From Lepidodermella squamata (lineage: Eukaryota; Animalia; Gastrotricha), in NCBI GenBank assembly GCA_047495785.1, contig JBLDXI010000042.1:4278001-4342000 (forward strand): a stretch of 64,000 nucleotides of DNA, given 5' to 3'. Positions within the stretch are counted from its first letter, which is position 1. Every line of letters begins with the position of its first letter. The notes under the pieces were generated by a model. It had not been told where the DNA came from. It did no database searches and saw only the letters and a program-made list of their open reading frames with translations. A program made the translations under genes and the position numbers. Below are positions 2,204-35,940 of this stretch, one piece after another.

Positions 2204-2211
2204 TATATAAA
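2204..2211 (+). promoter_or_regulatory. TATA box of small secreted-protein gene copy 1
   Basis: TATATAAA about 60 nt upstream of ATG 2266; conserved at the same offset in copy 2 (20504-20511). Confidence 0.65.
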
Positions 2212-2265
2212 GACTGTAGTGATCAGGCCCGATATAACTAGAATACCCTTTGGCTTCTTTCTAAC

Positions 2266-2713
2266 ATGCAAACTATCAACTACTTTATTGCGATTACGCT
2301 ATCCGTGATTGTAAACAGCATAGCTGAAGAACTGGAAATTATGGCGGAAGTTGTACCAGTTCGTGAAGCTGTTTCTGAGGAAAACCCCATGTCCTTGAAA
2401 ACATTGATCCGGGTTCCGCCTCGGCTGGACGGTGATTATTTAAATCATTCCATGACCTGCCAATTATTGAGAATTTATTCATTTTGCAGCAAAGACAAGA
2501 ATCGGTCTAAGGCGGAGTGCTCAAGTAATATGGCAACAGTTACCGCATCAAACCCGGGGTCAGATTATACGGAAACTTCGCATGAAGAAATGTATAGAAC
2601 TCATTGGATCGCAAGCAATTTGTGACAATAGAGCATCATTCTATTTATGGGCTCAGTTCCTTGCGAAAGACATAATGGCTGGAAAGCTCGATGGCAAAAT
2701 TCGCATAGTCTGA
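2266..2713 (+). CDS. Small secreted protein (129 aa), two exons 2266-2431 and 2490-2713; signal peptide, acidic pro-like segment, cationic C-terminal region with two Cys
   Basis: A 58-nt GT..TTTTGCAG phase-1 intron joins MQTINYFIAITLSVIVNSIA..PPRLD to AKTRIGLRRSAQVIWQQLPH..KKCIELIGSQAIC..KIRIV*. The same structure occurs in the paralog, and exon-2 differences are mostly synonymous. Confidence 0.85.
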
Positions 2714-3460
2714 TTTTGAGTTTTGATTTTTCCGAATTAACAATTGATTCGAAAATTGCTAGCACTGGATTCTATCTAATAAAATTTGCCATTCGCCATT
2801 TTATTTTATACACACTTCCGTTGTACTGATATTTCAGCTCTCAGCAATCAGTGTAGAAAGTGTCCTCTCGATCTTTGAAATCTCCTCCTAGACGTTCGAT
2901 TTTGAATAATGATTGAATAAAGCCTGCTCTTTTGCAAATTTTGTTTATGGGATATAGCGTGGGTTTGAATAATGAGCTCACGTTACTGCGAAGCTTCCAA
3001 GGGAAGTGATGCTGGTTTTGTAAGAGTGAGAGGTGAGTGATAAGGGTGTCACCATAGTTCACGGAAGCACTGTAATGGTAACGCGATAATCGCTGTGACG
3101 TCGCGGAAAGGCGGGCACTTCGGAGAGACATCGAGCTGAGCGTCTGCTTTTTGTTAAACGCGAAGATTTAATTAATGAAATGAAACGGGATCGCGACCTT
3201 ATTTGTTGCTCTGAAGTTTGACATTAGTCGATTGGCACATATACTTATTGGTTAGCGGTTATTTATTGCAGAAAAGAAAGTATTAGTATTTGTAGAGAGG
3301 AAATTGCAATGAATGACGCAGGAAGAGTCCACAAATTTTACCGTGACGAATAAAAATCTCTGGAGCCGATTTGCAATAGTTTTGATGAAATCAGATTAAT
3401 TCCAGCGTGAATACGTGCTGCTCAAATAGGCTATCAATATTATCCTAGCCAATCTTGTCC

Positions 3461-4657
3461 TCATCTTGTCATCAAATAGAAAAAGCATCCATCGACGACG
3501 AGGAGGGTTATGGTGGAGGTGGTCGCTATTACCACGTCAACCAGCCTCAGAAGAGTCAACTCATGCGCGAAACCCATTGACTTCAATGAAACCTCACGGC
3601 GCCAGTAATGCATTCGAGCCATTTCAACGGCAGCCAAAGAGTAGCATGTGATAACGATGCCAGTTGCCATGTTGAAAACGACCAGATAAACCAGCCAGAC
3701 AGGTTCCGTTGTTCGTGGTATAGACGAGAAAACGATGTCTAAAAGCATCGTGAATGCTAGGACAGTAGTTATTCCAAAAGTTGGCCGATCAGGTAACTTG
3801 GGCGGCATCAAGAATTGTCCAAGGTGGAGGACCGTAATGCTAACGACAGGATAAACTATGCTAGTCATAAAATAATGGGATTTGCGCCTGAATTTTATGC
3901 CGAATTCCATTTTGTAGTTTGGAAATCCCGAGAAGTTTGCTAAGTAAGTTCTCGATCTAAGAGGAGGCACGAACTCCCAAATTTCAGTAGAATCAATGAA
4001 TTTTAAAATGTCGTTAATATCAAATTTTAGAACTCGGAATACCACTTTGTTGGTTTGTTCTACAGAGTAGAAAATGATGTCGCAATCAAGGGTGTCGAAC
4101 GGGAATTTTTGGTAGGCGAATGATCCGCAAGCCGTATCAATTGTTTTGATCGAAATGTAATAAGCCGATCGAGAGTGGCTGAACGGATACACAGTAACGC
4201 TCTTGATAGCGTCTTCAAATGGCGCCGATTGTTCGTAGCCATTTTGATGCATCAGAGTCGGATACCACGTTTCTTCTTTTTTCATGCTGATTTCAAGTGT
4301 TCTCATTCCCGAAACATTGCAAGCTTCGCTGCCGAAGTAGTCCTCACATGCGGTTGAACAATTGTACCTCCAGTTTACGGAGATTTCACCGAAAAGGGAC
4401 AGCTTCTTATTGGTGTCGTCGATTTGTACAAAGCGGTCGAGAAACCACCATATGTCGACTTCAATAGGATTTTTGAATTTCTTGTCCACAGCCATATGGC
4501 TAGGCAGATCAATTGCTGTCACGTAAGGGCACTTCTCGAGGTAGATTCGTCTGAACTGTGACCAATTGATAGTTTGGTTGAATCTGAATCTCTCCACCGA
4601 AAAATCATCACTCCAGACTATGGATGAGCACAAAATCATTGTAAGTATGCATCTCAT
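3461..4657 (-). CDS. Divergent Cys-loop ligand-gated ion channel subunit, subfamily A (A1), intronless, 398 aa
   Basis: Signal peptide, WYP loop A, Cys-loop CGSFAYQKFPFDTLDC, pre-M1 FRRK, four hydrophobic helices, M2 PDRPTFGITTVLAFTMLL. Confidence 0.93.
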   Translation of the reverse strand: MRCILTMILCSSIVWSDDFSVERFRFNQTINWSQFRRIYLEKCPYVTAIDLPSHMAVDKKFKNPIEVDIWWFLDRFVQIDDTNKKLSLFGEISVNWRYNCSTACEDYFGSEACNVSGMRTLEISMKKEETWYPTLMHQNGYEQSAPFEDAIKSVTVYPFSHSRSAYYISIKTIDTACGSFAYQKFPFDTLDCDIIFYSVEQTNKVVFRVLKFDINDILKFIDSTEIWEFVPPLRSRTYLANFSGFPNYKMEFGIKFRRKSHYFMTSIVYPVVSITVLHLGQFLMPPKLPDRPTFGITTVLAFTMLLDIVFSSIPRTTEPVWLVYLVVFNMATGIVITCYSLAAVEMARMHYWRREVSLKSMGFAHELTLLRLVDVVIATTSTITLLVVDGCFFYLMTR

Positions 4658-5389
4658 TGCGAGGAATCATTCGTATTCTATGTGGATTCTGAATCCATAA
4701 TATAATTTAATAAAAGACCCGCAGCATTACCTTTATGATTTCGAATTTCCGTCCAGGAAGCTGCTTCAATTTGGTGGTTAGTAAAATTAATAAACCAACC
4801 TCGCCAATAGCACTCAATTAACCGATTTTTTAGAATTCGCAATGCCATTATGGAGCCAAGTGTAGAGCAGAGAGCGATGTAGGACAGCAGAACTTAGTAG
4901 GATAAGGATAATCGACATGAAGGACCACCCTTCGGTCGATTTCCGACTGAGCTCCCAGTGCTGACCGATAGAACTGGTAGGGATGATCCCTACCATCCTT
5001 AGCAGTACTTCGCTCTCTGGTACAGAGGTCTAATACTGCTGCCAAATGTGGACTTGACAGATTATACTTACGCAAGGGTTACTTACGCTTAGGATCGTCG
5101 AATTTCATGAGAATCGTTACCATGAAATTTGTTCGCTATTTCGAATGATTAATTATATATGTTCTACCGTTGGCTCAAATAAGGCTATGGATCCGTTGGC
5201 TATGAATCAAATAAATAAGGGAATACTCTATTGATAGCTCTATTGATAGTAATCCTATTCCTACATGCGCACTATTTGGAACCCATTTTTGGGGTGTTAA
5301 AGAGACATAACCCTGTGAAAATAGCGTAAATAACCGCAGGCGACCGGCACCTGATGACGAACTTTTGGAGCACCTGATGGCGAACGAAC

Positions 5390-6301: not shown

Positions 6302-8519
6302 TACATAAAACGACGCCAGGATTTTCTAGGCAAAATAATTCGGCTGTTTTCGCATACCTAATTATTTGTCCGGTAATATAACTTAACAATCCTGAGGCGC
6401 TGTTCGGTGGTGTATTTGAGAAAAACCATATTTTTAATTCAGTACTATAACGCGAGAGAAAAACATCGCCACCTGACGCGAGGATAGTGGCTCGTGCCTG
6501 CTTTCAGCGGTTTGCTCACAGTGCAGAACTTCTGACTCTGTCACTGTAGTATTTTGATTTGCGTTTTCAGGCAATAATCTCATCGAAATTGAACTGGAGA
6601 TGTCATTGAATGGTGCGATTGAACGCTCATAACTAAGCGGAAATTACACGGAAACTCAAAACTTGGAAATTACGAAATAACGAGAAACCCAAGAAACTCT
6701 GAACGCCGTTGATTGCTCGCACGTTGAAACAATTTTGAAATAAAATTTAGTTTTATGCACACTGAAACTTTTCGAGGCGAAGTTTTAGCGTTTTAGCACA
6801 AGTTCCATCATCATCTATATTGTTCAGATATGGCATACTTTGCTGTTGATGCGGCGGTAGCTGGCTGTCCGGAGCTGGAGCCCGACGATAAATAGGCGTT
6901 GGTCAGCCGCATGAAAGGTTTTATTGGTAATTTTTTCAGTTTTTTTCCGACTTTCGATCAACCTACTGAAGAGCATGGACGGCGATGAGTTTAACAAGGT
7001 ATTCAATACGGCTGGCTTGCGTATGGCGGCCACTAGGCTGCTTAACTTTCTTCGCGGAAGAAAACCGGTGGGTTAGCAACAACTTTATTTTACGCCTGGT
7101 CACTTTTTAATCAGTATTAAGGCTGTCTCATTGAAATCTCATGGAAATCTCAAAAGAAAACCTGTTCATGATCCATTGAAAGTGCAGATTGACGCGAAAG
7201 TTTATTTCGAAATATTCCTCATATGCTTTTATCATCTTTTAGCAATAAGAGCCTGAATAGCATAGGCTAAAAATTTAATCAAAAATATCTTCAGAATCTT
7301 TGATCAAGGAAACTCCGATATGATTAATGAGGTATTAGCAAGAGTTTTTTCTCTTTTCAGTCAAGCCTGACGATGTTATACTCGTGTTCTATAAAATCGC
7401 GAGACAGCAGACCGACGAAATCCATTGGCCATGCGACCGGCTTCGATCCTGAGCAAAATCGTGGTATCGTGGTTCATCGTCTGCCTTCAGGAAAGAGCGG
7501 CCACTGCTGTGTTACCTCGACTCTACGTTCATGTGTTCTCGAAGGGCTTCACAGCTTGCCGACCCCATCTTAGCTTCCCGCGGCGATGCAAAAGCAGATT
7601 TTTGATGCATATCGAGTGTTAGCTGGTGGCGATTCGATCGAAATTCAGCCTAATTTTGCCTAATTTTTTTCTACTTCCTTGATAATAACGTGACAGTAAT
7701 TCCTCCACCTTAATAATGATTTCTAAAAATTGTGTTTCTTGACATTATCGTCGTTTTACGGTTTAATTTCGTTAAAAACGGCCGAAATCAGCGACGAAGA
7801 GCAGAAATGGGAGCATTTGATTTAATTTCGAACAGCTGAAATAATGCGGATGAAATTGCGGCCGCCAATTACAAGCCAGTAATTCATTGGCGTGAAAACT
7901 TGGGTATGAACTGAGTTCTTGAGATTTCTCACACTAATTCATGATCATGGAATATGTTTCGTATTTTGAGCATGAATTCAGATACATTTTGAAAATCCTT
8001 GAATTAGGATACTCACAGGGCCCTAATTGATGGGATATCACAAGCTGAAAGTCCGATTTTTTATCACCCAAATTAGGGTGGTTTTTTTTTCTGGTGTATA
8101 TGACAACAATAGGACTAAAGTAGATCTTAGATTCGACTGGCATTACATGACAAATTCTAATTTGCCAGACAGTCTCATTTTATGATGATGCTTAAAAGGA
8201 CAACTCTGTGAGCCATTAGGATTACACAGTTTATGAGCATGGCTGATACTTCACTGAACAGGTGAGAATTCATATAACTACTAAAATGTTTTCCCGATCA
8301 AAAAAAGACGCCAAAAAGTAGCGTAACAGTTTAAATGAGGTTTACCCCAGTTAATGTTCAATCGAAGTGAACACAAGCAATTCGTGGTAATTTTGGTTTG
8401 CAAACTTGGTTTCAATTAAGGGTGTAAACATGAGGGACCCCTATTGATATGCCATAAACATGTCAGGCCTTCGTTAACGATGAACAGGTTGATCATTTTT
8501 CACTCCGTTTTTACTTCCT

Positions 8520-9830
8520 TCAAGTATGAAAATTAATAGCAAGCAGGGCCAATATTATTAAGGAAAAGTATGGCGAAGAACTAAGCATAAGAGCCGAGTT
8601 TGAATCTTTTCTGATCCTGTAAGATCCAATAATCGGCGGAACGGAGCGTTGAACAGTATAGATCGTGCCATCGTGATACGTCAATGTCTGGGGGTAAAAA
8701 GTAGTCTGCAGCACACTAGCGCCACTTGCTTTGTTGAAGGCCGTAAGATACGAGCATGCTTCTGTGAAAATAAAATCTTCAGTCACAATTAGGTGGGATC
8801 CGTACGGCTCCGCCAAGGCTTTGCATTGCATCGTTTTGACCCACTTTCCATCGGTGTTGCGGATAACTGCAATTGACGTTTTGTCCTCTGGTATAACGAA
8901 ATAAGTAAAATTTCCATCGCTAGCCATTATTGGCGAAATTGTAGTGCTGCTCACAGCTGAAGACGTCCATTTGACCAAGGGCGTAGGGGCTGTAAGGTCT
9001 ATACCATGCAAATTAGTCTGGCTTTTACCGTCCTTAAGCGCAAAGTTAATAGCAATAATCATATCGTTTACGACAATTGGTGTCCACGAGCCACCAAAGA
9101 TCGAACCCAGGGAAATCTCGTTCAAAATAGCTCCGGTAAGAGGATTCAATTCATAGAGCCGCCCAGAAGAAGAGATAAAGACCCGTTCCTCCTTATAGAT
9201 GGCTGACGAATAAACTGAGTTATCATTTACTCCCACATCGAATAACTCTAGAAAATCTGGTACTGACAGGGCTTTAACTCGTTTCGTGGTATTAGTTCCA
9301 GTTGCGTAAAGTATGCTGTTCTTCTGACTGCAGGACATGGTGAAACTGTCGGCAAAGAGTGCATCTTGCTCGTCATAAGTTTTATTTGATATTTGCTTCG
9401 TCTCAATATCTATTGCGAGAAACACCGACTTTCGAGGGTTTATCGTATTAATTCGAGAAATTAAATACGGCCTCCCATTACTGCCATAGCAGATCAAAGG
9501 TTGGGCTATCGTTTGGCCGAGCGTATTGGGGCTCTCTATGTTGATTGTTGCAGCTAATTCACCATCGGATTCGCGGACTAAGTGGAATGTGCCTTTGTCG
9601 CTTTGAAGGTAGATCAACCCTTGGAAGACCAAAGGCTGGTTAAGGATTGTGTATCCATCCACTGCCTTTTCCCAACGTTTGAAAAATTCCATACTAGGCG
9701 ATGCCTCGCCGAGAACATCAGGCCTGTAGCCGGAATGCGACGAATCACCACCCTCATTGGTCCACCACTCATCAGCTAGCGCTGATGAATTTAGGATAGC
9801 AAAAATGGCAAAAGCAAGTACAAATCTCAT
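8520..9830 (-). CDS. PQQ-like (BamB-type) beta-propeller repeat protein with signal peptide and probable GPI-anchor signal, intronless, 436 aa
   Basis: N-terminal WWTNEGGDSSHSGY, blade motifs (PLVFQGLIYLQSDKGTFHLVRESDGE; GRLYELNPLTGAILNE; LTAFNKASG), C-terminal SNSA + hydrophobic tail without cytosolic extension. Confidence 0.8.
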   Translation of the reverse strand: MRFVLAFAIFAILNSSALADEWWTNEGGDSSHSGYRPDVLGEASPSMEFFKRWEKAVDGYTILNQPLVFQGLIYLQSDKGTFHLVRESDGELAATINIESPNTLGQTIAQPLICYGSNGRPYLISRINTINPRKSVFLAIDIETKQISNKTYDEQDALFADSFTMSCSQKNSILYATGTNTTKRVKALSVPDFLELFDVGVNDNSVYSSAIYKEERVFISSSGRLYELNPLTGAILNEISLGSIFGGSWTPIVVNDMIIAINFALKDGKSQTNLHGIDLTAPTPLVKWTSSAVSSTTISPIMASDGNFTYFVIPEDKTSIAVIRNTDGKWVKTMQCKALAEPYGSHLIVTEDFIFTEACSYLTAFNKASGASVLQTTFYPQTLTYHDGTIYTVQRSVPPIIGSYRIRKDSNSALMLSSSPYFSLIILALLAINFHT

Positions 9831-10103
9831 TTTTCGTAACGTGAGAAGCGGAATAAAAGTTGCTAAAAAAAATGCTTTATATGCTCTAATTTTCTTCTTA
9901 TCAGTAGGCGATAAACGGACTTGCGGGGCTTAGCTGTTTAGTGCACAGTGGATATCCGAAATTTTTGGCAGAGCAGCTACGTCGTCTTACGTTGTAGTCC
10001 GGGTTTTGCATACCCGGACAAAAGGGTAGGGTGTATATTGTTTTGTTGACTGATTCTCGTCTTTTGTCAGCTATTATATGATTTGTATCGTTCTCTGACA
10101 GCA

Positions 10104-13100
10104 CCCGGACTCAAAAAATTTAATCAGGCATGCTCTGTAAATCGGAATAAAATCGTGTATTTGCTTGATTTTCGCTGTAAATTGCTGTGATGTCGATTTA
10201 TTTCAGCTCAGGATCCGGCTGTAAGCTGATTTTTCGCCTCTGTAATTCGAAATAAGGCTTGATACAGCGGTTTACAACCGTGGAAATGCTGCTTTTTGCT
10301 GCTGTAATTGGCAATAAAACATGTTATCCAACTTTACAGATTGTCAAAAGCTGAAAGTATGGTCTGTAAACTGCTAAAAGGCAAGTTACCCGGTTTTACA
10401 GACCTAGACAAGCTGAGTTTCCGGACTGTAACATGCTATAAGCACTTTACTTGGCTTTACAGACTGCCAACAGCTGATACTAAGGGACTGTAAAGCTCAG
10501 TTAGACGAATTACACGGCTTTACAGACATCGGCAGGCGGATTTTTCGGACAATAAAATGCTATAAGGCACGTTACTTGGCTTTACAGACCTAGATAATCG
10601 GAGTTCCCGGACTAAAAAATGCTATAGGGCTTTACACGGCAATACGGATCTAGACCAAGCTGAATTTCATGACTATGTAAGCGGAGAAATCTTCGAAAAT
10701 GACTGATGTGACCTATGTGACCTGAAATTACACACTGTAAACTGCTGTAAACGGAATCTATTCGTGAATAATCACACAATATTTCGATGTGAGGTATTGA
10801 AATTGGCGAAGTGAACAACGCAACCTTCGGGTAATTTAATTTAATTTAATTAGGGATCAATAAATTCGTGTAAATTCTTAAAACTCGCGTGTCCAATTTT
10901 CGATGAAAGTGAGGCAAATCGAGGTGGAACACAAAATTACATAAAATAGGGAAAAATCAGAAATTTCAAAAATCAAAGGAACTTGCCACGTGTGGCGTAA
11001 TACTTTCTCTTAAGACACGTATTTTTGTCTTCAAATTTACGGCGACCTCAAAAGCGTCAATTTCTTCAAAACTAGGACATAACAAGCGTAGTTGCGAAGC
11101 TAATTTCGGTGATTAAACGTCGGTTTATAGCAAATTCTACCCAGTTTCACGTTCCGTATAATAATTAGGGCACATAGATGGAGGGAATTTTTGACATTTT
11201 TATTCTGGAATTTCTAGTTTCTTTCAAAATTCCGCAAAATTCATAGCCAAGTCCAATTTTTCGGATTTTCAAGTATAAAATTCTTATATTTTTTCATTAT
11301 GTTTCATTATATTGAGATTCTATATGTTGGTAGCACTTTTGGAATTTACAGGCATTTTTACCTCCAGAAAAAAGCTTAATTTTTCGCTGATTAGCCATTA
11401 AAATTATATGGTCATATTCAAGGATCAATTGTAAAGTTTATTTAACATGAATTTTGAATTTTCTTAATTAAAAAGTAATCAAGTGTTCACGATTTTTATT
11501 CAGCGAAAATTTAGAAGTTTTACCATTATCATTAAAAGCTAATCGGAATACATTTAAGAGGCAGAAATATATTTTCAGGGACTATTCTTGGCAATAATTT
11601 TGATTCGCCAATTGTTGTAGATGAGCATTTTCCAAATAGGAAATCTGAAATTTCAGGTGAATTGAATAAATTTCAATTGACCTGTTTTCAGATAATATTT
11701 ACCGTTTTTTTAATTTTATGACAGAATAGTAAATGAGCGGCAAGAATTTTAGCTGCGAATAGCGATAGCCAAATTTTTCTGTTAAATAGGAGCGATTCGT
11801 GTTTTTTCAATCACCACGCCGCGGAGTTACGCAACAGCTGCTCGCACGCCGCATTTCGCACACACATATGAAAAATTATGCACAACACAGAAACCACGCG
11901 TTTTTGACCTATAAAACTTGTTTATCAGCTGAATTGCCCATGCAGATTTCTTGGCTAGAGCGAATAATTCAATTTATTGCAGCGAAATTCTGGTCGACAT
12001 GAACTTCACTCTATACCTGGCGTGAGTTTATAATTTGCCGAAATTACATTTAATTTGAAGCATTTTAAAGAAATCGGATCGGCGATGTCGAACGATGAAA
12101 ACGACGTCAAGGTGATACGCATCGTCTTTCTCACATACCACATCGTGGCAAGATACGTTTGAATCCTACCATTTTGAATTCTTCAATTCTATTTTGTAAT
12201 TTGGCTTGATTTTTCCCGGATTTTTTAAACTTTTTGAACACTTCTCAATTTCATTCATTAATAGTTTGATTTGAGGTTCTGGCGGCTAGCTAGGTTCCAA
12301 GTTGAGCTAACTAAAGCCGAAGTTCATAAATTAGCGTCTCGCGTCAATCAATTACGTGCTACAATGTACAAGTACACGTTGTTCTTAAGAAACGTATTTA
12401 TTTATTTTTGCTGGATCGCCGAATTTAAGTAAAATTTTGAAATTTTGAAATTTTGAATTTTATGAACAATTTTAAAATGATTGATAAATTTGAAAAATCG
12501 TTATGGGCGAATTCATTATGATTTTTCGACAATTCGAGGCAAAGATAGAAAAATCAGGGACTACTCAGAATTTCTACTAAGATTGAGAATTCGAAAACCT
12601 TTTGGTCTATTTCATCTCGTCGCGGAAAATTGGAAATTTACTTCACATTGTGAGGCAAAATATGGAGTTTCACAATAAAATAAATTTTCACAAATCATTA
12701 TCATTTCCTGAAATTCTATTTGTGGATTCATTCCTCATAGGAGTTGCTTTTCTTCTCGGGTTCGCCAGCGCATCAATCTTCTTGTGGCTGGTTTTTTTGT
12801 GACAGGTATAGCAATAAATTTCATTTTGATTCCAAGATCTGCTTATTTTCCCCGATTATTTTAGGCTGGGTAAACTACGCACTGAATGCTCGGTGAGTCG
12901 ATGCGTGTCGGAAATCGCCGCCTGGCCGAAACTTCGAGATAACGAGAGGCCTTGTTTTGCTGTTTGCTGCTCGTTCCGCATCGACTTGACTTTTCTTTCA
13001 AAAACGGTTTTTTTACTGTTGAGATCCTCATAATTTTTGCTTATTTTCACGGTTCACGGATAACCGATAATTTTTTGAATTTGTGATGCACGTGTTTTTT

Positions 13101-13771
13101 GTTCGGCGAGAAATATATGGCTGATTTTTCTTGAAAAATTAGACTTGGCGGCATTTGCTTGACATGAGTTGCCTTGCGGATCTGAGCTTTATTAGCGTCG
13201 GAAATATGGCCCGATATAAATAAAAAATACTGATACTCCTCTGAAAATGTGCTAAAGTCGCCGATCGCCAATGATCGTTTCTCCGATCTTTTCAAAATTA
13301 ATTCTTGTTATTGTGAAAATTGTTGTGAAAATCGATTTTGCTTGTAATTCATTGTTTTGAAGTAATTTGTGATCTTTATACCTTATACAGCGATTTACAG
13401 ACGCTGGTCGAGGCACTGTAAATTCCTGTATTAGCCCTGAGACTGAAGACTTCACATTTTCGGCATTTTTGCTCTTCAGTAGTTTACTCAGCCTTCGAAT
13501 TTCAAAGACTGTGTAAACTGCTGTAAGGCAAAAATGGCAGAACTTGTGAAGTTGTCACTTCCTGGGCTTTTATAGGAATTTACAGCGCCTCGACGAGTGT
13601 CTGTAAATCACTGTAAAGGTGAGAATAAATCCCAGTGTAATTGAGTGGAAGGTACCAATAAAATTGCGTTTGTAAACGGGTGTAAGTCAACATAAGATTT
13701 CCAGTGAAATACAGCAGAATACATTGACAGCAATTTACAGCGATTTACAGCGATGAATTTTTGAGTCCGGG
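10104..13771. mobile_element. Non-autonomous TIR DNA transposon (CMC/EnSpm-like), ~3.67 kb
   Basis: Termini CCCGGACTCAAAAA / TTTTTGAGTCCGGG, flanked by CA on both sides (2-bp TSD). Many subterminal CTGTAAA/TTTACAG motifs; no transposase ORF recognised. Confidence 0.7.
10324..10680 (+). repeat. Degenerate ~62-bp tandem repeat (about 6 units) in the transposon subterminal region
   Basis: A TTAC(A/T/C)(C/T)GGCTTTACAGAC-like core recurs near 10324, 10386, 10447, 10510, 10572 and 10631. Confidence 0.75.
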
Positions 13772-14566
13772 CAATGCAATGACCATTTTTTAATTGGACC
13801 ATACTTTAATATTCATCTACCTAATTCCTTTTTTTCTGCATATAATATCTTTCTTTGCATCTGGGCATTTTCTACAGACAATCCCACTTTTTCTCACATC
13901 TGATTTAAAAACAGCCGGAAATGTGAAAAATGATTCAGCGCGTTTTCCTCGACAATAAATCATACGTTTCGTTGCCAGATCAGGCGCGAGGAAAAAGGCA
14001 CGTGGATTTCATAGATGAAGGCACGTGCGAAAGGCGCAATAGTCAATCTTATGCGTTCATCGCTTACCTGAAGAATATCAACATCGTCGAAACCTCTCGC
14101 TCATTCCGCGGCAACTCAGCGTTGTCATAAACACTGTAATTTCAGGGCTGTTATAATTTTCAAGGCCATTCGTTGGAGCATTTCGATAAGTCCGGCAGCA
14201 CTATTGCTGTACTTACAAATACAGCTGGATACCGTACAATCATTTACAGCTGCTATCGACAGTACTTGGACAACATTTTTCATTCCGCAGTACCAAATCA
14301 TACGGCTAACGGCTACCTCGCCGTATTAGGAGTAAAACCGTACTTTTTATACAGTAATACTCGGTACAAAATATGCTTACTGTAATAGTTCTACTGTTTT
14401 TATATTCAATAGAGGTGAATTCAAGCCTTTCTTGGTGCTTTTGGTTAGCAAACTTGGTTCCAATTAAGAGTGTTAACATAAGGGACGCCGAGTGCTATGC
14501 CATGCGAATATAAGAGCTTCGACAATTGATGAGATTGATCATTTTCCATTCCTCCATTTACTTCAT

Positions 14567-15889
14567 TCAAATATTAAATTTAATAGCAAGCAGAGTCAAT
14601 AGTAATACGGAAAAGACCGGCGAAGAACTAAGAATAAAAGCCGAGTTTGAATCGACTTTACTGACCCTGTAAGATCCAATAATCGGCGGTACGAAGAGTT
14701 GAATAGCATAGATCGTGCCATCGCGATACGTCACTGTCTGGGCGTAAAACTTAGTCTGCAGCACGCTAGCACCACTTGTTTTGTTGAAGGCCGTTAGATA
14801 CGAGCATGCTTCTGTGAAAATGAAATCTTCAGTCACAATTAGATGGGAACCGAATGGCTCCTGCAAGGCCTTGCATTGCATGGTTTTCACCCATTCTCCA
14901 TCGGTGTTGCGGATAACAGCAATCGACGTTTTGTCCTCTGGTCTAACGAAATAAGTAAAATTTCCATCACTAGCTATCATTGGCGATGTTGTAGTCCCGC
15001 TCACGGCTGGAGTTGTCCATTTGAATACGGGCGTAGAGCCTGTAAGGTCTATACCGTGCAAATTCGTCTGGCTTATAGCATCGTTGTACGTGAATGTAAC
15101 TGCAAGAACCATATCGTTTACGACAATTGGTGTCCACAAGCCGCCAGCGTTCGAACCCAGGGATATCTCGTTTAAAATAGCCCCGGTTAGAGGACTCAAT
15201 TCATAAAGCCGGCCAGTAGACGAGATGAAGACCCGTTCCTCCTTATAGATGGCTGACGAATAAACTGTGTTATCATTTACCCCTACTTCGAATTGCTGCC
15301 GAAAATCTGGTACGGACAGGGCCTTAACTCGCTTCGTGTTCTCAGTGCCAGTTGCATAAAGAATGCCGTACCTACCATCGCAGGACATGCGGAAGTCTGT
15401 GGCAAACAGTGCATCTTGCAGTAGGTCGTAAGTTCTACTTGTTATTTTCTTTGTATTAATATCAATTGCGAGAAATACGGACTTTCGAGGGTTTATCGTA
15501 TTAATTCGAGAAATTAAATACGGCCGCCCATTGTTGCCTTCGCAAATTAAAGGTTGAGCAATCGTTTGGCCATCCGTATTGGGGCTTTCTATATTGATTG
15601 TTGCAGCCAATTCGCCATCGGTCTCGCGGACAACGTAAAATGTGCCTTTGTTGCTTTGAAGATAGATCAACCCATGGAAGACTAACGGCTGGTTGAGGAT
15701 TATGTAGCCATCGAAAGGACGCACAGCTTTTTCCCACTGCTTTCCGAATTCCATACTAAGTGAGGCTTCTCCAAGAACCTCAGGACGGTAGCCTGAGTGA
15801 GTCGAATCACCACCCTCATTTGTCCACCATTGATCAGCTTGGGCCGAATAAATAAATATGGAAAAAAGCAGATATATTGCTTTTCCCAT
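14567..15889 (-). CDS. PQQ-like beta-propeller repeat protein, paralog 2, signal peptide + probable GPI signal, intronless, ~440 aa
   Basis: Colinear paralog of 8520-9830; likely ATG at 15889 (MGKAIYLLF). The 3' flanks of the two genes are also similar. Confidence 0.8.
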   Translation of the reverse strand: MGKAIYLLFSIFIYSAQADQWWTNEGGDSTHSGYRPEVLGEASLSMEFGKQWEKAVRPFDGYIILNQPLVFHGLIYLQSNKGTFYVVRETDGELAATINIESPNTDGQTIAQPLICEGNNGRPYLISRINTINPRKSVFLAIDINTKKITSRTYDLLQDALFATDFRMSCDGRYGILYATGTENTKRVKALSVPDFRQQFEVGVNDNTVYSSAIYKEERVFISSTGRLYELSPLTGAILNEISLGSNAGGLWTPIVVNDMVLAVTFTYNDAISQTNLHGIDLTGSTPVFKWTTPAVSGTTTSPMIASDGNFTYFVRPEDKTSIAVIRNTDGEWVKTMQCKALQEPFGSHLIVTEDFIFTEACSYLTAFNKTSGASVLQTKFYAQTVTYRDGTIYAIQLFVPPIIGSYRVSKVDSNSAFILSSSPVFSVLLLTLLAIKFNI

Positions 15890-17055: not shown

Positions 17056-18258
17056 TCATCTTGTCATCAAATAGAAAAAGGAGCCATCGACAATGATGAG
17101 CGTTAGGAGGGAGGTAGTCCCTATTACCACATCCATTAGCCTCAAGACACTCACATCTCGAGCGATACCCAACGCTTTCAATGAAACCTCACGACGCCAG
17201 AAATGCATTCGAGCCATTTCAACAGCAGCCAACGAGTAGCAAGTGACGACGATACCAGTTGCCATGTTGAAAACGACCAGGTAAACCAGCCAAACAGGCT
17301 CTGTCGTTCGCGGTATGGACGAGAAAACGATGTCTAAAAGCATCGTGAATGCTAGGACAGTAGTTATTCCAAAAGCTGGCCGATCAGGCAGTTTGGGTGG
17401 CATTAGGAATTGGCCGAGGTGAAGGACCGTAATGCCAATGACAGGATAAACTATGCTGGTCATAAAATAATGGGATTTACGCTTGAATTTAATCCCGAAT
17501 TCCATTTTGTAGTTTGAGAATACGGAGAAATGAACCGAGTAAGTTTTGCTTCTCAGGGGAGGCACGAACTCCCAAATTTCAGTAGATCCGATGAATCTAG
17601 ACATATTGTTTATCGCAAATTTGTCAATTCGAAATGAAACTTTGTTGATAGCTTCTATGGAATAGAAAATTACATCGCAATCGAGCGTGTCGAACGGGAA
17701 TTTTTGGTAGGAAAACGAGTCACAAGCCGTATCAATTGTTGTAATTGAAACGTAATAAGCGGTCCGGATGCGGCTGAGTGGATAGACTGTGACGCTCTGG
17801 ATAGCCGCTTCAAATGGCGCGGATTGATCGTAGCCGTTTTCGTGCATCAGAGACGGATACCACGTTTCATCTTTCTTCAAGCTGATTTCTAAAGATTTGA
17901 CCCCCGAAACATTGCAGCTTTCCCGGCCGAAGTAGTCTTCACATACGGTTGAGCAATTGTAGCTCCAGAATGCGGTGATTTCGCCGAAGAGGGACAGCTT
18001 CTTATTGGAGTCATCAATTTGAACAAAGCGATCAAGAATCCACCATACGTCGACTTGAATCGGATTTTTGAATTTGGTTTCCAGTGCCAAATGACTAGGC
18101 AGATCAATTGCTGTAGCATAAGGGCATTTCTCGAGAAAAATATGCCGGAACTGAGTCCAATTAACGGTCTGATTGGATCTGATCTTCTCCACGGAAAGAT
18201 TATCACATAAGACTAGTGTGGACGTGCACAAAATAATTGTAGTTATTATGCGATTCAT
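17056..18258 (-). CDS. Divergent Cys-loop LGIC subunit, subfamily A (A2), intronless, ~400 aa
   Basis: ATG at 18258 (MNRIITT signal peptide), Cys-loop CDSFSYQKFPFDTLDC, four TM helices; paralog of A1. Confidence 0.93.
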   Translation of the reverse strand: MNRIITTIILCTSTLVLCDNLSVEKIRSNQTVNWTQFRHIFLEKCPYATAIDLPSHLALETKFKNPIQVDVWWILDRFVQIDDSNKKLSLFGEITAFWSYNCSTVCEDYFGRESCNVSGVKSLEISLKKDETWYPSLMHENGYDQSAPFEAAIQSVTVYPLSRIRTAYYVSITTIDTACDSFSYQKFPFDTLDCDVIFYSIEAINKVSFRIDKFAINNMSRFIGSTEIWEFVPPLRSKTYSVHFSVFSNYKMEFGIKFKRKSHYFMTSIVYPVIGITVLHLGQFLMPPKLPDRPAFGITTVLAFTMLLDIVFSSIPRTTEPVWLVYLVVFNMATGIVVTCYSLAAVEMARMHFWRREVSLKALGIARDVSVLRLMDVVIGTTSLLTLIIVDGSFFYLMTR

Positions 18259-20565
18259 AATGTGATGAACGACTCTTTCTCGAGTGCCATGTACTTGATG
18301 ACGATGGTTTATTAGTTTTAGCAACTGCTGATGTGAAGCAGAGTCATTGGCGGAAATTGGATTGACGCCAAGGTAAAGCTACAGCTCTTTTATTAATTTC
18401 GAGTTAGGAGTCGAAATGGAGGAGCGTCGCCAGAACGCGAGGCCATGGCCTACATTTCCCCGTCAAGAGTCTTGCCCGAAAGAAACTCGGGTGTATCTCA
18501 TAGAATATTTTTAGCAGTTAACGTGTTAACAATGAAGCGAGATGAAATATTTGAATTTTATAACAATAGCAAACATTAACATACTCTCGGCCGTAGGAGG
18601 CGGGTGGCAAAATTAATGGTTTGCCTAGCGTTCACCTAGTTTCTTTATTGCCATTTTTAACAATCTTTTCACTGTGCTCACCTAATAACTTGATCGGACT
18701 TTATTGAACCTGCTATGCTATAGGAATGCCCCGGATGGGAAACGTAAGCGGGGAGAGACAAATCACCCAAACCCCGCAGAGTAAACATGATTACAGATTA
18801 CAGTGTTGCTTGGCTTAAAGAAGGGGGAGGGGAGGACCAATAATTAAGTTAATTCAACGCCAAAATGGGCACTGCGGAGAGACATCGGAAAGTCTGCTTC
18901 TTATTATCGAATCCAAAAAATTGGGAACTGAACTGGACGATTTTATTGAATTTGTAGCGGAATAGTTAGGCCATCAAACAGTGAACATTAGTTGATTGAT
19001 GCTAAAAGTAAGAAAAATCGAATGATTGAGTGAAGGAGAGAATGAATCCTATGCGCGTTTAGAGTTAATCGTTACGTATTATCGTTCAGCTCGGTGCCAG
19101 AATGCAAAGCTGAAACGAGCACTCGCCGAATTTTTGAGCGTAGTCACTAGTATTAAGTAGCTAAGCGGCTCAAGGTCGCTGACTGTGTTCCCAAAATAGG
19201 GAAAGGCTGGAAGTCGTGAACAAATTTCCGCCAGTTTTCCCGGGCTTACTGTACCGAAAGCTGTCAGCCTGCTGTGCTCCGCTTTGGCCTAAATGAAGGC
19301 CGACAATTGTTCAACTGTAAAGGAAACCTACGTCAGGGTCTTGAAAGTGTTTGGCAGTCCGGCATAGACAGGGTTCAGAAATTCTTTTACTCTTATCACG
19401 TTATCCTCCTTCATAGCTATGTTCCTCCTTCAAAAACATGAGGACTAAAGAAACCTGCTTTTCTGTTACTTTTTTATCCAATATATGGTATCTTTTGTTG
19501 TTGAGCTCTCAACCGGGTACATACTATACAATTCTCCAATTTTTAATGTCGAGACTTTTTATTTTTCACCCGATTGGTCTGATGATTTTGCAAGCAGAGT
19601 TGCATCTACCTTCCCTAAAAGTGTCATCCTTACTTCTCACAGTAGATAACGTGAAGCAGCAATTGAACGCGACCGTTTTTCGGCATATATCATATATTTT
19701 CCAAATCTTATTTAGAAAGGAAAATATTTGCCCAAACAGTCCTCACTCTTGGGCGCGTAATTTATCTGCAGTGTTGTGCGATTTTTTCCGCTTCGGTAAA
19801 AGCGACTATGTGAAATGAGAGATCACAAAAGTTCAATCTGTCCAAATTTCAATCTTTGACTCAATTTCATTTATAATTGATCAGTCTTTGCAAGCGGTAA
19901 TTTCATCACTTTTGATCTGAACAGTTTTATATGTATGCAGTACGCTATTAGCGTAATTAATGTGGCCCTTGCTTTTGTCTGAAATAAATAACTGGAGACG
20001 CACACTTGACCTAAAGCGAAAAACGGGTAACTGCTTATCAATTGCGATCGCACTAGCTTACGTCGAAGTTTGACAAGAATTACATGACCAATTAAATTAT
20101 AGCTTGGCGAAAAATGAATGTCACAGACCGCATAAGAGGGACATCTTTAGTGAGCAATTAACTATGATAGCGATCGGGCATTCATTGAACAGCTTCATTC
20201 ATAAAAAACATTTGTCTGCGTTTACGGAGGTTTTTAGTTTCATCCATTTAATCAGTAGGGAGAGAGGAGATAGGGATGAGACATATATCCATCGGCAATT
20301 ACAAGACATGTAAAACACTGTTTACAATGATGTTTTCGCGGTGTAAGGAAGAGCGATGCTTGCGACTGTAACTAATTTTTACCCGATTTACTGTTCAAAT
20401 GAGGTGCGCATTAGCTCTTCGACGTATTACGATTAATCTTTCAACAGGCCCATTTAAGAGGGTAAAAATGGGGACATACGCCCCACGCTTGCTGTCTCCT
20501 ATATATATAAAGGCTGAGTTGACGGGGCCCGATATTACTAGAATCCCCTTTGGCTTTTTTCTAAA

Positions 20566-21013
20566 ATGCGAACTATCAACTACTTTATTGCGATTACGCT
20601 ATCCGTGATTGTAAACAGTATAGCTGAAGAACTAGAAATTGTTCAAGTTGTACCAGTTCGCGAAGCTGTTTCCGAGGAAAATCCCATGTCGTTGAAAACA
20701 TTGATCGGAGTTCCGCCTCGGCTGGACGGTGAGTACTGAGATTTTTATGACTTGCCAATTATATATTGAGATTTTCATTCATTTTGCAGCTAAGACAAGA
20801 ATCGGTCTAAGGCGGAGTGCTCAAATAATATGGCAACAGTTACCGCACCAAGCCCGGGGTCAGATTATACGGAAGCTTCGCATGAAGAAATGTATAGAAC
20901 TCATCGGATCGCAAGTAATATGTGACAATAGAGCATCGTTCTATTTATGGGCCCAGTTCCTTGCGAAAGATATAATGGCTGGGAAACTCGATGACAAAAT
21001 TCGTATTGTCTGA
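20566..21013 (+). CDS. Small secreted protein paralog (128 aa), exons 20566-20728 and 20790-21013
   Basis: GTGAGT donor, TTTTGCAG acceptor, 61-nt phase-1 intron, TATATAAA at 20504; near-identical to 2266-2713. Confidence 0.87.
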
Positions 21014-21698
21014 TTATTTTGTCAGAATTTCCAAGTTATTCGAACAATCAATAGAACTGGATTCTAATATAATAAAATGCGCCATTTTATTTTAAACACA
21101 CTCCCGTGTTGATGTTTCAGCTTTCAGCAATCAGCATATCCTTTCGGTCTAGCAATATCCTCCTGGACATTCAATTTTTCTTTTGCGAAGTTATTATATG
21201 GGATAGCGTGAGTTTAAAAATGGGTGCATGTTATTGCGAAGCTTCCCGGCGTAGTGCTGTTGGCATTTCAGAGTGAGAGAAAAGGGTGTCACCAAAGTTC
21301 ACTGTGGAAGCACCATCTAAGCTAACAGGATTATCGCTGCGACGCCGCGAAAAGGCGGGCACTTCGAAGAGACATCGAGCTGAGATTTAATTAATGAAAC
21401 GAAACGGGATTGTTGCCTTATTCGTTGATTTGAAGTTATCAGACATTAGTCAATATTCAGTTGAAATATATCCTTATTGGTTAGCAGTTATTAATTGCAG
21501 AGAGGAAATTGTTATATAGCATTTGCAGAGAGTAGATTGCGATGAATGACACAGGAAGATTCCGAAAATTTTACCGCAATGATAATAAAATCCCTGGAGC
21601 CGATTTTCAATAGTAGCTACTGATGATGACAAATTAATTCCAGCGTGAATATCTGCTGCTCGAATGGGCTATCAATCTCATCCTCGCCCAACCAGTGA

Positions 21699-22895
21699 TC
21701 ATCTTGTCATCAAATAGAAAAAGCATCCATCTACAACGATGAGGGTTATCGTGGAAGTAATCGCTATTACCACGTCAACCAGCCTCAGAAGAGTCAACTC
21801 ATGCGCGACACCCATCGACTTCAATGAAACCTCACGGCGCCAGAAATGCGCTCGAGCCATTTCAACAGCAGCCAAAGAGTAGCATGTGATAACGATGCCA
21901 GTTGCCACGTTGAAAACAACCAGATATACCAGCCAGACAGGTTCCGTTGTTCGCGGTATTGCCGCGAAAACGATGTCTAGCAACATTGTAAATGCCAGGA
22001 CTGTAGTTATTCCAAAAGTAGGCCGATCAGCTAATTTAGGAGGCATTAAGAATTGGCCGATGTGAAGCACCGTGATCCCAACAACAGGGTAAACTATGCT
22101 GGTCATAAAATAGTTGCTCTTGCGCCTGAATTTTATCCCGAATTCCATATTGTAGTTTGGAAATCCCGAGAAGTTTGCTAGGTAAGTTCTCGATCTGAGA
22201 GGAGGAACGAACTCCCAAATTTCCGTAGAATCAATGAATTTTAAAATGTTGTTAATATCAAATTGCTTAACTCGGAATACAACTTTTTTGGTATCTTCCA
22301 CAGAGTAGAAAATGATGTTGCAATCGAGGGTGTCGAACGGGAATTGTTGGTAGGAAAATGATCCGCAAGCTGTATCAATTGTTGTGATCGCAATGTAATA
22401 AGCGGTCCGAGAGCGACTGAACGGATACACAGAAACGCTCTTGATAGCGTTTTCAAATGGCGCCGATTCTTCGTAGCCATTTTGGTGCATCAGATTCGGA
22501 TACCAAGTTTCCTCCTTTTTCATGCTGATTTCAAGTCTTCCCATTGCCGAAACATTGCAAGCTTCGCTGCCGAAGTAGTCCTCGCATGACGCTGAACAAT
22601 TGTATCTCCAGTATACTGAGATTTCGCCGAAAAGGGACAGCTTCTTATTGGTGTCGTCGATTTGTACAAAGCGGTCGAGAAACCACCACACTTCCACTTC
22701 AATCGGATTTTTGAACTTCGTGTCAACTGCCACGTGGCTAGGCAGATCAATTGATGTCGCGTAAGGGCATTTCTCGAGGAAAATGTGCCTAAACTGTGGC
22801 CAATTAATAGTTTGGTTGGATCTGAACTTCTCCGCTGATAATTCATCGCACAAGACCATGGATGAGCACAAAATCATTGAAAGTATGCTTCTCAT
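21699..22895 (-). CDS. Divergent Cys-loop LGIC subunit, subfamily A (A3), intronless, 398 aa
   Basis: ATG at 22895 by alignment with A1; Cys-loop CGSFSYQQFPFDTLDC; four TM helices. Confidence 0.93.
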   Translation of the reverse strand: MRSILSMILCSSMVLCDELSAEKFRSNQTINWPQFRHIFLEKCPYATSIDLPSHVAVDTKFKNPIEVEVWWFLDRFVQIDDTNKKLSLFGEISVYWRYNCSASCEDYFGSEACNVSAMGRLEISMKKEETWYPNLMHQNGYEESAPFENAIKSVSVYPFSRSRTAYYIAITTIDTACGSFSYQQFPFDTLDCNIIFYSVEDTKKVVFRVKQFDINNILKFIDSTEIWEFVPPLRSRTYLANFSGFPNYNMEFGIKFRRKSNYFMTSIVYPVVGITVLHIGQFLMPPKLADRPTFGITTVLAFTMLLDIVFAAIPRTTEPVWLVYLVVFNVATGIVITCYSLAAVEMARAHFWRREVSLKSMGVAHELTLLRLVDVVIAITSTITLIVVDGCFFYLMTR

Positions 22896-23613
22896 TGCGA
22901 GGAATCGGGAATCACTCGCATTCCGCATAGATTTTGAATCCATAATATAATTTAATAAAAGACCAGCAGCATTGCCTTCACGATATCGATTCCGTCCAGG
23001 AAGCTGCTTCAATTTTGTAGTTGGTAAAGTTAATAAACTAACCCCGCTCATGGCACTCAATTGACTGATTTGTCGGAATTCATAATCCCAAAATAAAGTG
23101 TAGACAGACTCCGTTATTGCAGCAAAAGTTGGGCACGACAGAATATGCTTGATTTTTTTAGAATTTTGCCACTCGGTAATAGACCTTTATTCTACCTATT
23201 AAAATTTGTCATCGCCCATGAAATTTGTCCCGTCTCCATTGAACTGATGAGATATCATTGAGTAGTTTATTGTTAAAACAATGATCCGACTGATACTAAG
23301 TAACAGTTTGCCTATTGACACGGGTATTTACATTTAACTAATTCTTTCTGTACAAATAATGATTATTTATAATTTTGCATGAGTCTTTTATCTTTGAAAT
23401 GACGATGTCGCACATGAGTGACTGCGGATTGACTTATTAATTGGACGTTTCAGGAATCAGTATAGAAAGCGTACTTTCGATCTTTGAAAGAGTTCGAGTA
23501 ACGGGAAATTTTATTGAAATGGAATAATGAATAGGTCTTTGAGTGATGGTTAAATTGAAATCGCAAGCAGCCCTCCAAGAAATAAAAAGCAGAATACATA
23601 TCTTCGGAGCCAC

Positions 23614-35903: not shown

Positions 35904-35940
35904 ATCTCAATCAAAAGAAGATGGCATGGGCATTATTATA

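Follow-up and report, generated by a model that had tools for sequence, protein, structure and literature searches.

The window, a stretch of 64,000 nucleotides from the gastrotrich Lepidodermella squamata, carries two open reading frames on the minus strand that a first-pass annotation had described as intact, intronless paralogs lying among animal genes and transposons. Both frames were found to be intact and to consist of a single exon. The features of the two genes, referred to as A and B, are listed below.

8520..9830, minus strand: gene A, predicted PQQ_2/BamB-type propeller, single-exon open reading frame of 436 aa plus stop
9771..9830, minus strand: predicted signal peptide of A, aa 1-20, A-L-A before D, hydrophobic window score 3.18
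9726..9767, minus strand: N-terminal motif of A, W-W-T-N-E-G-G-D-S-S-H-S-G-Y, aa 22-35
8523..8600, minus strand: predicted GPI-type C-terminal signal of A, C-tail hydrophobicity 2.75
14567..15889, minus strand: gene B, paralog of A, single-exon open reading frame of 440 aa plus stop, ATG at 15889
15836..15889, minus strand: predicted signal peptide of B, aa 1-18, A-Q-A before D
15788..15829, minus strand: N-terminal motif of B, aa 21-34
14570..14647, minus strand: predicted GPI-type C-terminal signal of B, C-tail hydrophobicity 2.92
8351..9785, no strand assigned: duplicated block, copy 1 (self-blastn), coding sequence plus ~170 nt of 3' flank
14399..15847, no strand assigned: duplicated block, copy 2 (self-blastn)

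The proteins are 78% identical over 434 aligned amino acids (dS 0.44, dN/dS 0.31), and the duplicated blocks at 8351-9785 and 14399-15847 match at 82.6% over 1452 nt in the self-blastn comparison. A dispersed, host-specific repeat of ~3.7 kb without long open reading frames separates A from B, and animal genes (Cys-loop channels, Rap_GAP, a protein kinase and GAPDH) flank the pair on both sides, on the same 5.1 Mb contig. With these neighbours and this repeat, the description of the locus as lying among animal genes and transposons holds. The GC and GC3 values of the propeller genes (0.44/0.45) resemble those of the adjoining animal genes. Because the Cys-loop genes near the pair are single-exon as well, the single-exon structure of A and B carries no weight for a transfer. 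An exact look-up of both proteins in an assembled-read collection found neither; the nematode SL1 leader was looked for in the genome and was absent, which speaks against a nematode.

A signal peptide and a GPI-like tail had also been proposed, and a Kyte-Doolittle heuristic applied to the sequence layout finds both in A and in B. Each protein starts with a hydrophobic N-terminus with small residues at positions -3 and -1, and ends in 13-14 hydrophobic residues with small polar residues (D-S-N-S-A) upstream; the hydrophobic stretch is separated from the stop by 4 residues according to the Kyte-Doolittle window and by 2 as judged by eye. The tail of A comprises candidate attachment residues (S-N-S-A), a spacer of ~7 residues and a hydrophobic end of 14. 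In the AF2 model of A, the signal peptide region appears as a low-confidence N-terminal helix, while pLDDT falls below 50 at residues 410-419 and a terminal helix follows. Among 44 sampled family members, a signal peptide is present in 42 and the C-tail hydrophobicity cut-off is passed by 34 (~32 look hydrophobic-tailed by eye), with ~11 members having no C-terminal hydrophobic tail.

Directly after the signal peptide, A and B share the consensus W-W-T-N-E-G-G-D-S-[ST]-H-S-G-Y-R-P, in which W23, G27, G28 and H32 are invariant or nearly so across 26 paralogs. The more general form W-x-x-F/x-G-x-x-x-x-H-[ST]-G occurs in both window proteins, in 42 of 46 other gastrotrich rows and in 8 of 11 relatives from outside the gastrotrich; 18 of 32 bacterial modules fit it as a strict pattern, and the remainder mostly carry near variants as judged by eye. 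Bacterial propeller modules begin with the same motif (for example W-P-T-F-G-N-G-P-A-H-T-G-Y-F-P), and the sharing of this N-terminal motif with prokaryotic propellers, as first proposed, is thereby borne out. The Pfam model PQQ_2 (PF13360) scores A at 24.9 and B at 26.2 bits against a gathering cut-off of 27.6, which several paralogs exceed (best 49.5 bits). A profile built from the 26 paralogs matches BamB in the PDB with an E-value of 2e-18. The AF2 model of A (pLDDT 85, pTM 0.84) has ~33 strands, and Foldseek matched it with probability 1.0 to BamB, tetrathionate hydrolase and designed eight-bladed propellers, the best matches being tetrathionate hydrolase (8e-17) and BamB (~1e-15). On this model, A and B are eight-bladed beta-propellers of the PQQ_2/BamB type, in agreement with the prokaryote-style, PQQ-like propeller first described. 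The ESM Atlas returned just weak bacterial PQQ_2 clusters at 0.83, under the counting level.

Two narrower assignments were rejected. With the NCBIfam models of BamB proper (TIGR03300/NF008351; cut-offs 285 and 423) the scores reach just 17-21 bits, and the signal peptide ends in A-L-A before D with no lipobox cysteine. The match to quinoproteins (PQQ-dependent dehydrogenases) aligns ~86 residues (profile positions 208-293, E 1e-10) and not the full length.

The pair belongs to a large gastrotrich family. At E<=1e-5 the family has 104 matches in the genome, located on more than 20 contigs of Mb size, and these include about 60 full-length stand-alone genes besides giant multi-propeller genes. 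The products of all of them would be eight-bladed PQQ_2/BamB-type propellers that are secreted. Animal genes stand on either side of the pair on its 5.1 Mb contig, family copies lie on more than 20 contigs and the composition is host-like; the genes are integrated into the host chromosomes. Among the six closest paralogs dN/dS ranges from 0.13 to 0.45 and dS is at least 0.38, being saturated in the pairs with the most distant paralog; the genes are under purifying selection. The differences among these six are not concentrated in loops (126 of 195 strand positions variable against 136 of 193 loop positions; Fisher p 0.23), which gives no hint of a diversifying binding face. An acquisition of two genes is not what the locus records, as A and B belong to an expansion of ~60 genes that is old and highly diverged, and any bacterial origin is a property of the whole family rather than of this pair.

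Stand-alone PQQ_2/BamB-like repeat proteins with this N-terminal motif are typical of bacteria and archaea, and the PQQ-like repeats of animals occur mostly within larger proteins such as EMC1 and AASDH. A profile search was performed against 1.84 billion proteins, and relatives were taken from the best 150 matches. Among these, all proteins with a domain of at least 116 bits are stand-alone and ~400 aa long, ranging from P0018 (200 bits) to P0146 (117 bits), whereas bacterial surface-protein modules reach 70-114 bits per domain and none exceeds 114. The relatives at 117-200 bits are secreted proteins. Their sources are bdelloid rotifers (Adineta, Rotaria, Didymodactylos), transcriptomes of foraminifera, the metatranscriptome of a millipede holobiont and unplaced environmental contigs; named examples are Adineta ricciae CAF1536409.1, Didymodactylos carnosus, Rotaria sordida and the Bolivina and Nonionella transcriptomes. 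The bdelloids are the sole annotated animals among the best 150 matches with a domain of at least 116 bits, and 8 of the 11 nearest relatives are without a named organism or derive from mixed samples. With the family profile the host EMC1 scores 2.9 bits, an AASDH-like propeller 13.7 bits and a further PF13570-matching open reading frame 17.4 bits. EMC1 and AASDH (ACSF4) both occur in this genome and belong to the same broad repeat superfamily, but their propellers are domains within larger intracellular or ER proteins. By these scores the family lies closer to the bacterial modules than to the host's own EMC1 and AASDH-like propellers; the place of nearest relatives, however, is taken by eukaryote-derived stand-alone proteins, three bdelloid genera among them. 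A word-based protein search with gene A gave no match, and one with the mixed alignment A2 recovered just P0042 and weak prokaryotic matches; these blanks mean little because the known relatives were missed. A literature search found no paper on the family in gastrotrichs or rotifers.

The bdelloid proteins (CAF1536409.1 / A0A816BKH6 and others, all uncharacterised) are likewise stand-alone and ~400 aa long, and carry W-P-T-F-G-G-x-x-A-H-T-G at the N-terminus, the same motif as the window genes. As with A and B, the bdelloid gene consists of a single exon in the one contig examined, and in A. ricciae an ATG further upstream in the same frame yields a signal peptide. The Rotaria protein shares 31% identity (E 1e-50) with a tail-less gastrotrich member, whereas the window proteins share just 23% identity with a bdelloid protein over half the length. 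Unlike A and B, the bdelloid proteins have no GPI-type tail, and they form one 50%-identity cluster among the best 150 matches in contrast to the large gastrotrich expansion. The bacterial modules (P0009, Verrucomicrobium-related; P0001, with a dockerin; P0003) have the same fold family and head motif and are extracellular, and they presumably bind, in which they may be likened to the gastrotrich propellers. They differ in being parts of proteins 1,000-4,500 aa long that also carry subtilase, bacterial Ig and cadherin-like domains, and in having no eukaryotic targeting signals. Their identification as bacterial rests on adjoining genes, on the subtilase, bacterial Ig and cadherin-like domains, and on Verrucomicrobium relatives.

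A tree of 32 bacterial modules, 48 gastrotrich sequences and 11 outside sequences, unrooted, built by a quick method and containing many long branches, has a 99% branch that separates the 32 bacterial modules from the gastrotrich and outside sequences. The window pair falls in a starred clade with four paralogs from the same contig, and the bdelloid proteins share its side of the tree. Because the bacterial modules make up one side of the 99% branch, the animal genes are sister to them and not nested among them. With the bacterial modules forming a single clade in an unrooted tree, the animal genes do not sit inside a donor clade, and no donor can be named.

The horizontal transfer put forward in the first-pass annotation thus survives in part. 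A bacterial-type profile and motif make an ancient transfer plausible; the tree leaves it unproven, the bacterial modules being a sister group there and not a donor group. Likewise, the nearest relatives are non-prokaryotic and group with the gastrotrich sequences opposite the bacterial modules, so an old bacterial origin of the family, as judged from sequence comparison, is plausible but unproven. The source of the family would be the bacterial PQQ_2 propeller type rather than the host EMC1 or AASDH propellers, the most likely history being that a bacterial module was captured long ago and then underwent birth-and-death expansion in the gastrotrich, during which the GPI tail would have been added; the direction and date of any transfer are what we infer from these comparisons. 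The GPI-type tail arose within the gastrotrich expansion. The tail-less members are the closest to the outside relatives, and the earlier phrase of a conversion into GPI-type surface proteins therefore fits.

An old capture has to be weighed against vertical descent, in which an old eukaryotic family of secreted PQQ_2 proteins was lost in most lineages and expanded in the gastrotrich with no transfer into animals. The position of the gastrotrich sequences with outside eukaryote-derived sequences across the 99% branch from the bacterial modules agrees with this account, as do the relatives in three bdelloid genera, foraminiferal transcriptomes and a millipede-holobiont metatranscriptome, and the fully host-like composition. 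We nevertheless regard it as unlikely, though it deserves to be kept in view: the distribution is patchy, the bdelloids are the one annotated animal group among the best 150 matches with a domain of at least 116 bits, and similarity to the bacterial modules (up to 114 bits) far exceeds that to the host PQQ-like propellers (<=17 bits). Bdelloid rotifers are known for foreign genes. Multiple displacement amplification, for its part, produces chimeric reads. This method was used to amplify the DNA of a tiny animal for the probable source assembly, and 370 non-metazoan contigs needed to be removed from that assembly (PMC11660948), which gives some ground for suspecting that A and B are bacterial contamination or an amplification chimera. 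That suspicion is close to refuted and we give it hardly any credence, in view of the 104 matches spread over more than 20 contigs of Mb size, the Cys-loop, Rap_GAP, kinase and GAPDH genes flanking the pair on a 5.1 Mb contig, GC and GC3 equal to those of the neighbours, the eukaryotic signal peptides and GPI-type tails, the host-specific dispersed repeat between A and B, and bacterial proteins that all remain at or below 114 bits per domain among the best 150 matches.

We consider it probable, with moderate confidence, that the two reading frames are functional paralogs of a gastrotrich expansion of bacterial-type origin that encode GPI-anchored, non-catalytic surface binders. The signal peptide would direct the propeller protein into the ER, and after its cleavage the first propeller strand, W-x-x-x-G-G-D-x-x-H-S-G, would lie at the mature N-terminus. 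The C-terminal signal would be exchanged for a GPI lipid, so that the propeller would sit on the outside of the cell membrane, where it may act as a non-catalytic binding module similar to BamB and to the propeller modules of bacterial surface proteins. This function is suggested by analogy, and the ligand- or microbe-binding role put forward in the first-pass annotation is likewise conjectural. BamB (YfgL) is an eight-bladed PQQ_2 protein of similar size (Foldseek TM up to 0.77, normalised to BamB) that is non-catalytic and lipid-anchored at a membrane surface, as proposed for the gastrotrich proteins; however, its anchor is an N-terminal lipobox cysteine rather than the predicted C-terminal GPI of A and B, and animal cells have no BAM complex at their surface.

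The anchor predicted for A and B from the layout of their tails could instead be a permanent membrane anchor, or the hydrophobic stretch could be non-functional. One outside relative, P0058, does have a genuine transmembrane helix with a cytoplasmic tail behind it, but in A and B the stretch is just 13-14 residues long, lies at most 4 residues (2 by eye) from the stop, has no basic cytoplasmic cluster and is preceded by the small residues and polar spacer of a classic GPI layout. The same layout recurs in ~32 diverged paralogs, and we find a permanent anchor or an idle tail rather doubtful. More improbable still is that these proteins are secreted enzymes, tetrathionate-hydrolase-like or quinoprotein-like, and not binding modules. 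Tetrathionate hydrolase of Acidithiobacillus ferrooxidans (6L8A), an enzyme of acidophilic sulfur oxidisers, is the best structural match and of similar length (E 8e-17, TM 0.66, 14% identity), the profile matches tetrathionate hydrolase (E 1e-7) and PQQ alcohol dehydrogenases (E 1e-10), and H32 and D305 are nearly invariant across the family. Yet it is BamB, which is non-catalytic, that gives the strongest sequence matches, and the PQQ dehydrogenase matches span just ~86 residues, the mature protein being ~390 aa against 560-600 aa in quinoproteins. The conserved aspartate belongs to a repeated [AS]-x-D-G blade motif and H32 lies within a closure motif common to bacterial adhesin-type modules. 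A fast-diverging and, by prediction, largely GPI-anchored repertoire of 60 genes would also be unusual for a single activity.

Returning to the surface-binder reading, a more specific history can be offered as speculation, and as a whole we think it doubtful. A bacterial adhesin propeller module may have been captured once, in an ancestor shared by gastrotrichs and bdelloids or through exchange between them, and may then have gained a GPI signal and radiated into at least 60 receptors and giant tandem-propeller proteins that serve in the recognition of surfaces or of bacteria, whether as food or as pathogens. If this is true, an animal recognition system would have been built on a foreign fold. 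A fold otherwise confined in animals to two housekeeping proteins would have been recruited in its bacterial form, provided with eukaryotic secretion and lipid-anchor signals and expanded until it ranked among the larger surface-protein families of a little-studied phylum. Through the connection with bdelloids the origin of the family becomes directly testable: it may be old in spiralian micro-invertebrates, may have been acquired more than once, or may have moved between them. The family also presents candidate surface receptors in an animal without a described recognition repertoire.

The first-pass annotation described two intact, intronless paralogs encoding prokaryote-style PQQ-like beta-propellers converted into GPI-type surface proteins. 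The gene models were confirmed: genes A and B are intact single-ORF genes whose proteins share 78% identity across 434 residues, and DNA self-comparison demonstrated that the duplicated block spans the coding region and approximately 170 nt of 3' flank.

8520-9830, minus strand: gene A, intact ORF, 436 aa
14567-15889, minus strand: gene B, intact ORF, 440 aa counted from the ATG at 15889
8351-9785 versus 14399-15847: gene-sized duplication, 82.6% over 1452 nt

The dN/dS of the pair (0.31 at a dS of 0.44) indicates that the duplication is not recent and that both copies are under purifying, but not strict, selection. The annotated N-terminal motif, signal peptide and GPI-like tail were all present in both sequences. 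Each protein carries a hydrophobic leader with A-L-A or A-Q-A at its end, then Asp, and W-W-T-N-E-G-G-D-S-x-H-S-G-Y-R-P directly after the leader. At the C-terminus, small residues (D-S-N-S-A) lead through a short polar spacer to a hydrophobic stretch of 13-14 residues. Its best-scoring window lies 4 residues from the stop; read by eye, the sequence continues for 2 residues past the last hydrophobic one.

The window corresponds to C42:4278001-4342000 in a 121.2 Mb assembly of 151 contigs; the published L. squamata assembly, from MDA-amplified DNA, comprises 122 Mb in 157 contigs with 43% GC (PMC11660948). The pair's placement among animal genes and transposons was borne out by the surrounding Cys-loop channel-like genes, a multi-exon Rap_GAP gene, a protein kinase fragment, GAPDH and a dispersed repeat.

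3461-4657, 17056-18324, 21699-23060, 23614-24942 and 29884-38159 (four genes), minus strand: single-exon Cys-loop channel-like genes
1801-4847 and 20059-23090: 3.1 kb segmental duplication, 82% identity, small gene plus Cys-loop gene
10104-13775: ~3.7 kb sequence between genes A and B, no ORF over 85 aa
54450-55394, plus strand: GAPDH exon, GC3 0.78 versus ~0.45-0.59 in other window genes

The Cys-loop channel-like genes beside the propeller genes are a lineage-specific expansion of two tandem subfamilies (388-453 aa, weak Pfam Neur_chan matches, very short M3-M4 loops), and the GC/GC3 of A and B (0.44/0.45) is similar to theirs. Copies of the 3.1 kb duplication sit on both sides of the propeller pair. 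The first ~20 residues are absent from the GAPDH ORF, which therefore has at least one intron, and its GC3 fits the strong codon bias of a highly expressed gene. Having ~10 genome copies at 73-96% identity, the ~3.7 kb sequence is a dispersed non-autonomous repeat; it contains an internal inverted segment and is probably a mobile element. Shorter repeats, present in larger numbers, lie at ~13830-14040 and ~14205-14300. Genes A and B are real, constrained and host-integrated, and contamination as their source is practically excluded.

Both genes belong to a large, old expansion. Gene A as query gave 48 genome matches, while a profile search (E<=1e-5) gave 104, about 60 of them complete genes with a single ORF of 380-500 aa and no internal stop, spread over more than 20 contigs. 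Some matches are fragmentary or have stops, a sign of birth-and-death turnover, and those listed below on contigs C43, C15 and C28 are probably pseudogenes.

C43:299273-301899, C15:617834-619138 and C28:893829-895154: family members with in-frame stops or split into pieces
C10:1332362-1371387 (loci L055 and L056): clustered giant open frames (longest 2587 aa), built from at least four family propellers in tandem

A hydrophobic N-terminus was found in 42 of 44 sampled members. The C-tail hydrophobicity cut-off was passed by 34, of which ~32 by eye have C-terminal hydrophobic tails laid out as in A and B; ~11 of the 44 lack a tail and end at the last propeller strand. An alignment of 26 members (A1) holds W23, G90 and G328 invariant and G27, G28, H32, G233, P251 and D305 nearly so. 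The six closest paralogs gave dN/dS of 0.13-0.45 at dS of at least 0.38, with dS estimates saturating (1.7 to undefined) in pairs with the most distant of the six, and no concentration of differences in loops was seen among them.

To place the family among known proteins, a word-based protein search returned no matches, and an exhaustive profile search, covering 1.84 billion representatives, returned 31,379 at E<=1e-3. The best 150 of these were listed by whole-protein score, so that all proteins with a single domain of at least ~116 bits fall among them. Re-scoring by best domain placed eleven proteins on top, ten stand-alone (300-550 aa) and one of 1,060 aa (P0115): P0018 (200 bits), P0042, P0047, P0058, P0090, P0097, P0101, P0111, P0115, P0123 and P0146 (117 bits). 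Gastrotrich members outside the profile score 113-256 bits, so the scores of the eleven outsiders fall inside the range of the family itself. Adineta ricciae CAF1536409.1 is the source of P0123, and Didymodactylos carnosus and Rotaria sordida have orthologs 61-62% identical to it. EukProt transcriptomes labelled Bolivina argentea and Nonionella stella supplied P0058 and P0115. Two transcript-like contigs, P0018 and P0042, derive from runs SRR15239526-34, which belong to a holobiont metatranscriptome of the millipede Telodeinopus aoutii (PMC9519908), and the remainder are short environmental contigs of 34%-61% GC.

L071:6956-8182, contig CAJNOJ010000970.1: A. ricciae homolog, one segment, aligned at 96%

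Comparison with its contig (tblastn) detected no real intron in the A. ricciae gene; the annotation exceeds the coding length by 42 nt, a gap that may reflect allelic difference instead of an intron. An in-frame ATG 45 nt upstream of the annotated start would add a typical signal peptide, so the deposited protein looks N-terminally truncated. Against these outside proteins, the tail-less gastrotrich member C42:3608698 reaches 31-34% identity, with an E of 1e-50 to the Rotaria protein, and gene A reaches 23% over half its length. The closest kin of the family are eukaryote-derived proteins, including those of bdelloid rotifers.

The next tier is bacterial: propeller modules scoring 70-114 bits per domain within proteins of 1,000-4,500 aa that also carry subtilase, bacterial Ig, bacterial cadherin-like, Calx-beta and FG-GAP domains, on contigs with bacterial neighbours (e.g. 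an ABC transporter, a resolvase and a dockerin-bearing protein). Relatives of P0009, the best such protein, occur in Verrucomicrobium and in other bacterial MAGs. These modules share the head motif of the window proteins (e.g. W-P-T-F-G-N-G-P-A-H-T-G-Y-F-P-G-x-L-G), with the likeness reaching the Y-x-P-x-x-L-G that comes next. In contrast, the family profile gives L. squamata's own EMC1 a score of 2.9 bits, its AASDH/ACSF4-like propeller 13.7, and another ORF matching the latter's Pfam model 17.4. The family is much nearer bacterial surface-protein modules than canonical animal PQQ-like propellers, and "prokaryote-style" is apt to that extent, although the eukaryote-derived proteins, at 117-200 bits, are nearer still.

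A maximum-likelihood tree (IQ-TREE 'quick', LG+C20, SH-aLRT only) covered 48 gastrotrich propeller domains, 11 outside stand-alone ones and 32 bacterial modules, 91 in all, leaving out near-identical duplicates, truncated ORFs and domains covering <330 profile positions. A branch of length 0.75 with 99% support separates every bacterial module from the other domains. Among the latter, five gastrotrich members, including tail-less C42:3608698, cluster with the eleven outsiders (support 84), and the other 42 gastrotrich sequences form an expansion (support 82). The C10 tandem propellers are nested in this expansion, so the giants are products of internal duplication rather than a carried-over bacterial-style giant gene. 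The window pair shares a starred clade with four paralogs scattered along C42, joined next by two on C24. It is the tail-less members that lie closest to the outside relatives, so the most likely origin of the GPI-type tail is a gain in the gastrotrich lineage, in keeping with the proposed conversion into surface proteins.

The propeller reading itself was well supported. An AlphaFold2 model using A1 (pLDDT 85, pTM 0.84) has ~33 strands, after which a low-confidence linker (410-419) leads into a terminal helix. Foldseek against the PDB returned tetrathionate hydrolase (8e-17), BamB of several bacteria (~1e-15), PQQ alcohol dehydrogenases and designed eight-bladed propellers, all at probability 1.0; the A1 profile matched BamB (E 2e-18), PQQ dehydrogenases (~1e-10) and tetrathionate hydrolase (1e-7), with no EMC1 structure up to E 1. 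Pfam PQQ_2 scores of A and B (24.9 and 26.2 bits) lie just under the gathering score of 27.6, which several paralogs pass. Model, Foldseek, profile and PQQ_2 matches together identify A and B as PQQ_2-type eight-bladed propellers, here with eukaryotic secretion signals. BamB proper was rejected as their identity on NCBIfam equivalog scores far under the cut-offs, as was a quinoprotein, the dehydrogenase match spanning only ~86 positions. An enzymatic role is a minor rival to a non-catalytic binding role, which is suggested by the parallel with BamB and the surface modules of bacteria and by the large, diverging, membrane-displayed repertoire.

The proposed horizontal transfer remains a plausible hypothesis. 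Greater proximity to bacterial modules than to the animal's own EMC1 and AASDH-like propellers would fit an ancient bacterial origin, but the eukaryotic kin, bdelloids among them, make an old eukaryotic family, inherited vertically and widely lost, a serious rival. The 99% branch separates the bacterial modules from all others; being unrooted with many long branches, however, the tree shows sisterhood of the two groups rather than direction.

We found no paper on this propeller family in gastrotrichs or rotifers. The tail layout of A and B is classic and recurs in diverged paralogs, from which GPI anchoring is predicted. The genes represent a known propeller family in an unusual form: eukaryotic, putatively GPI-anchored and expanded.
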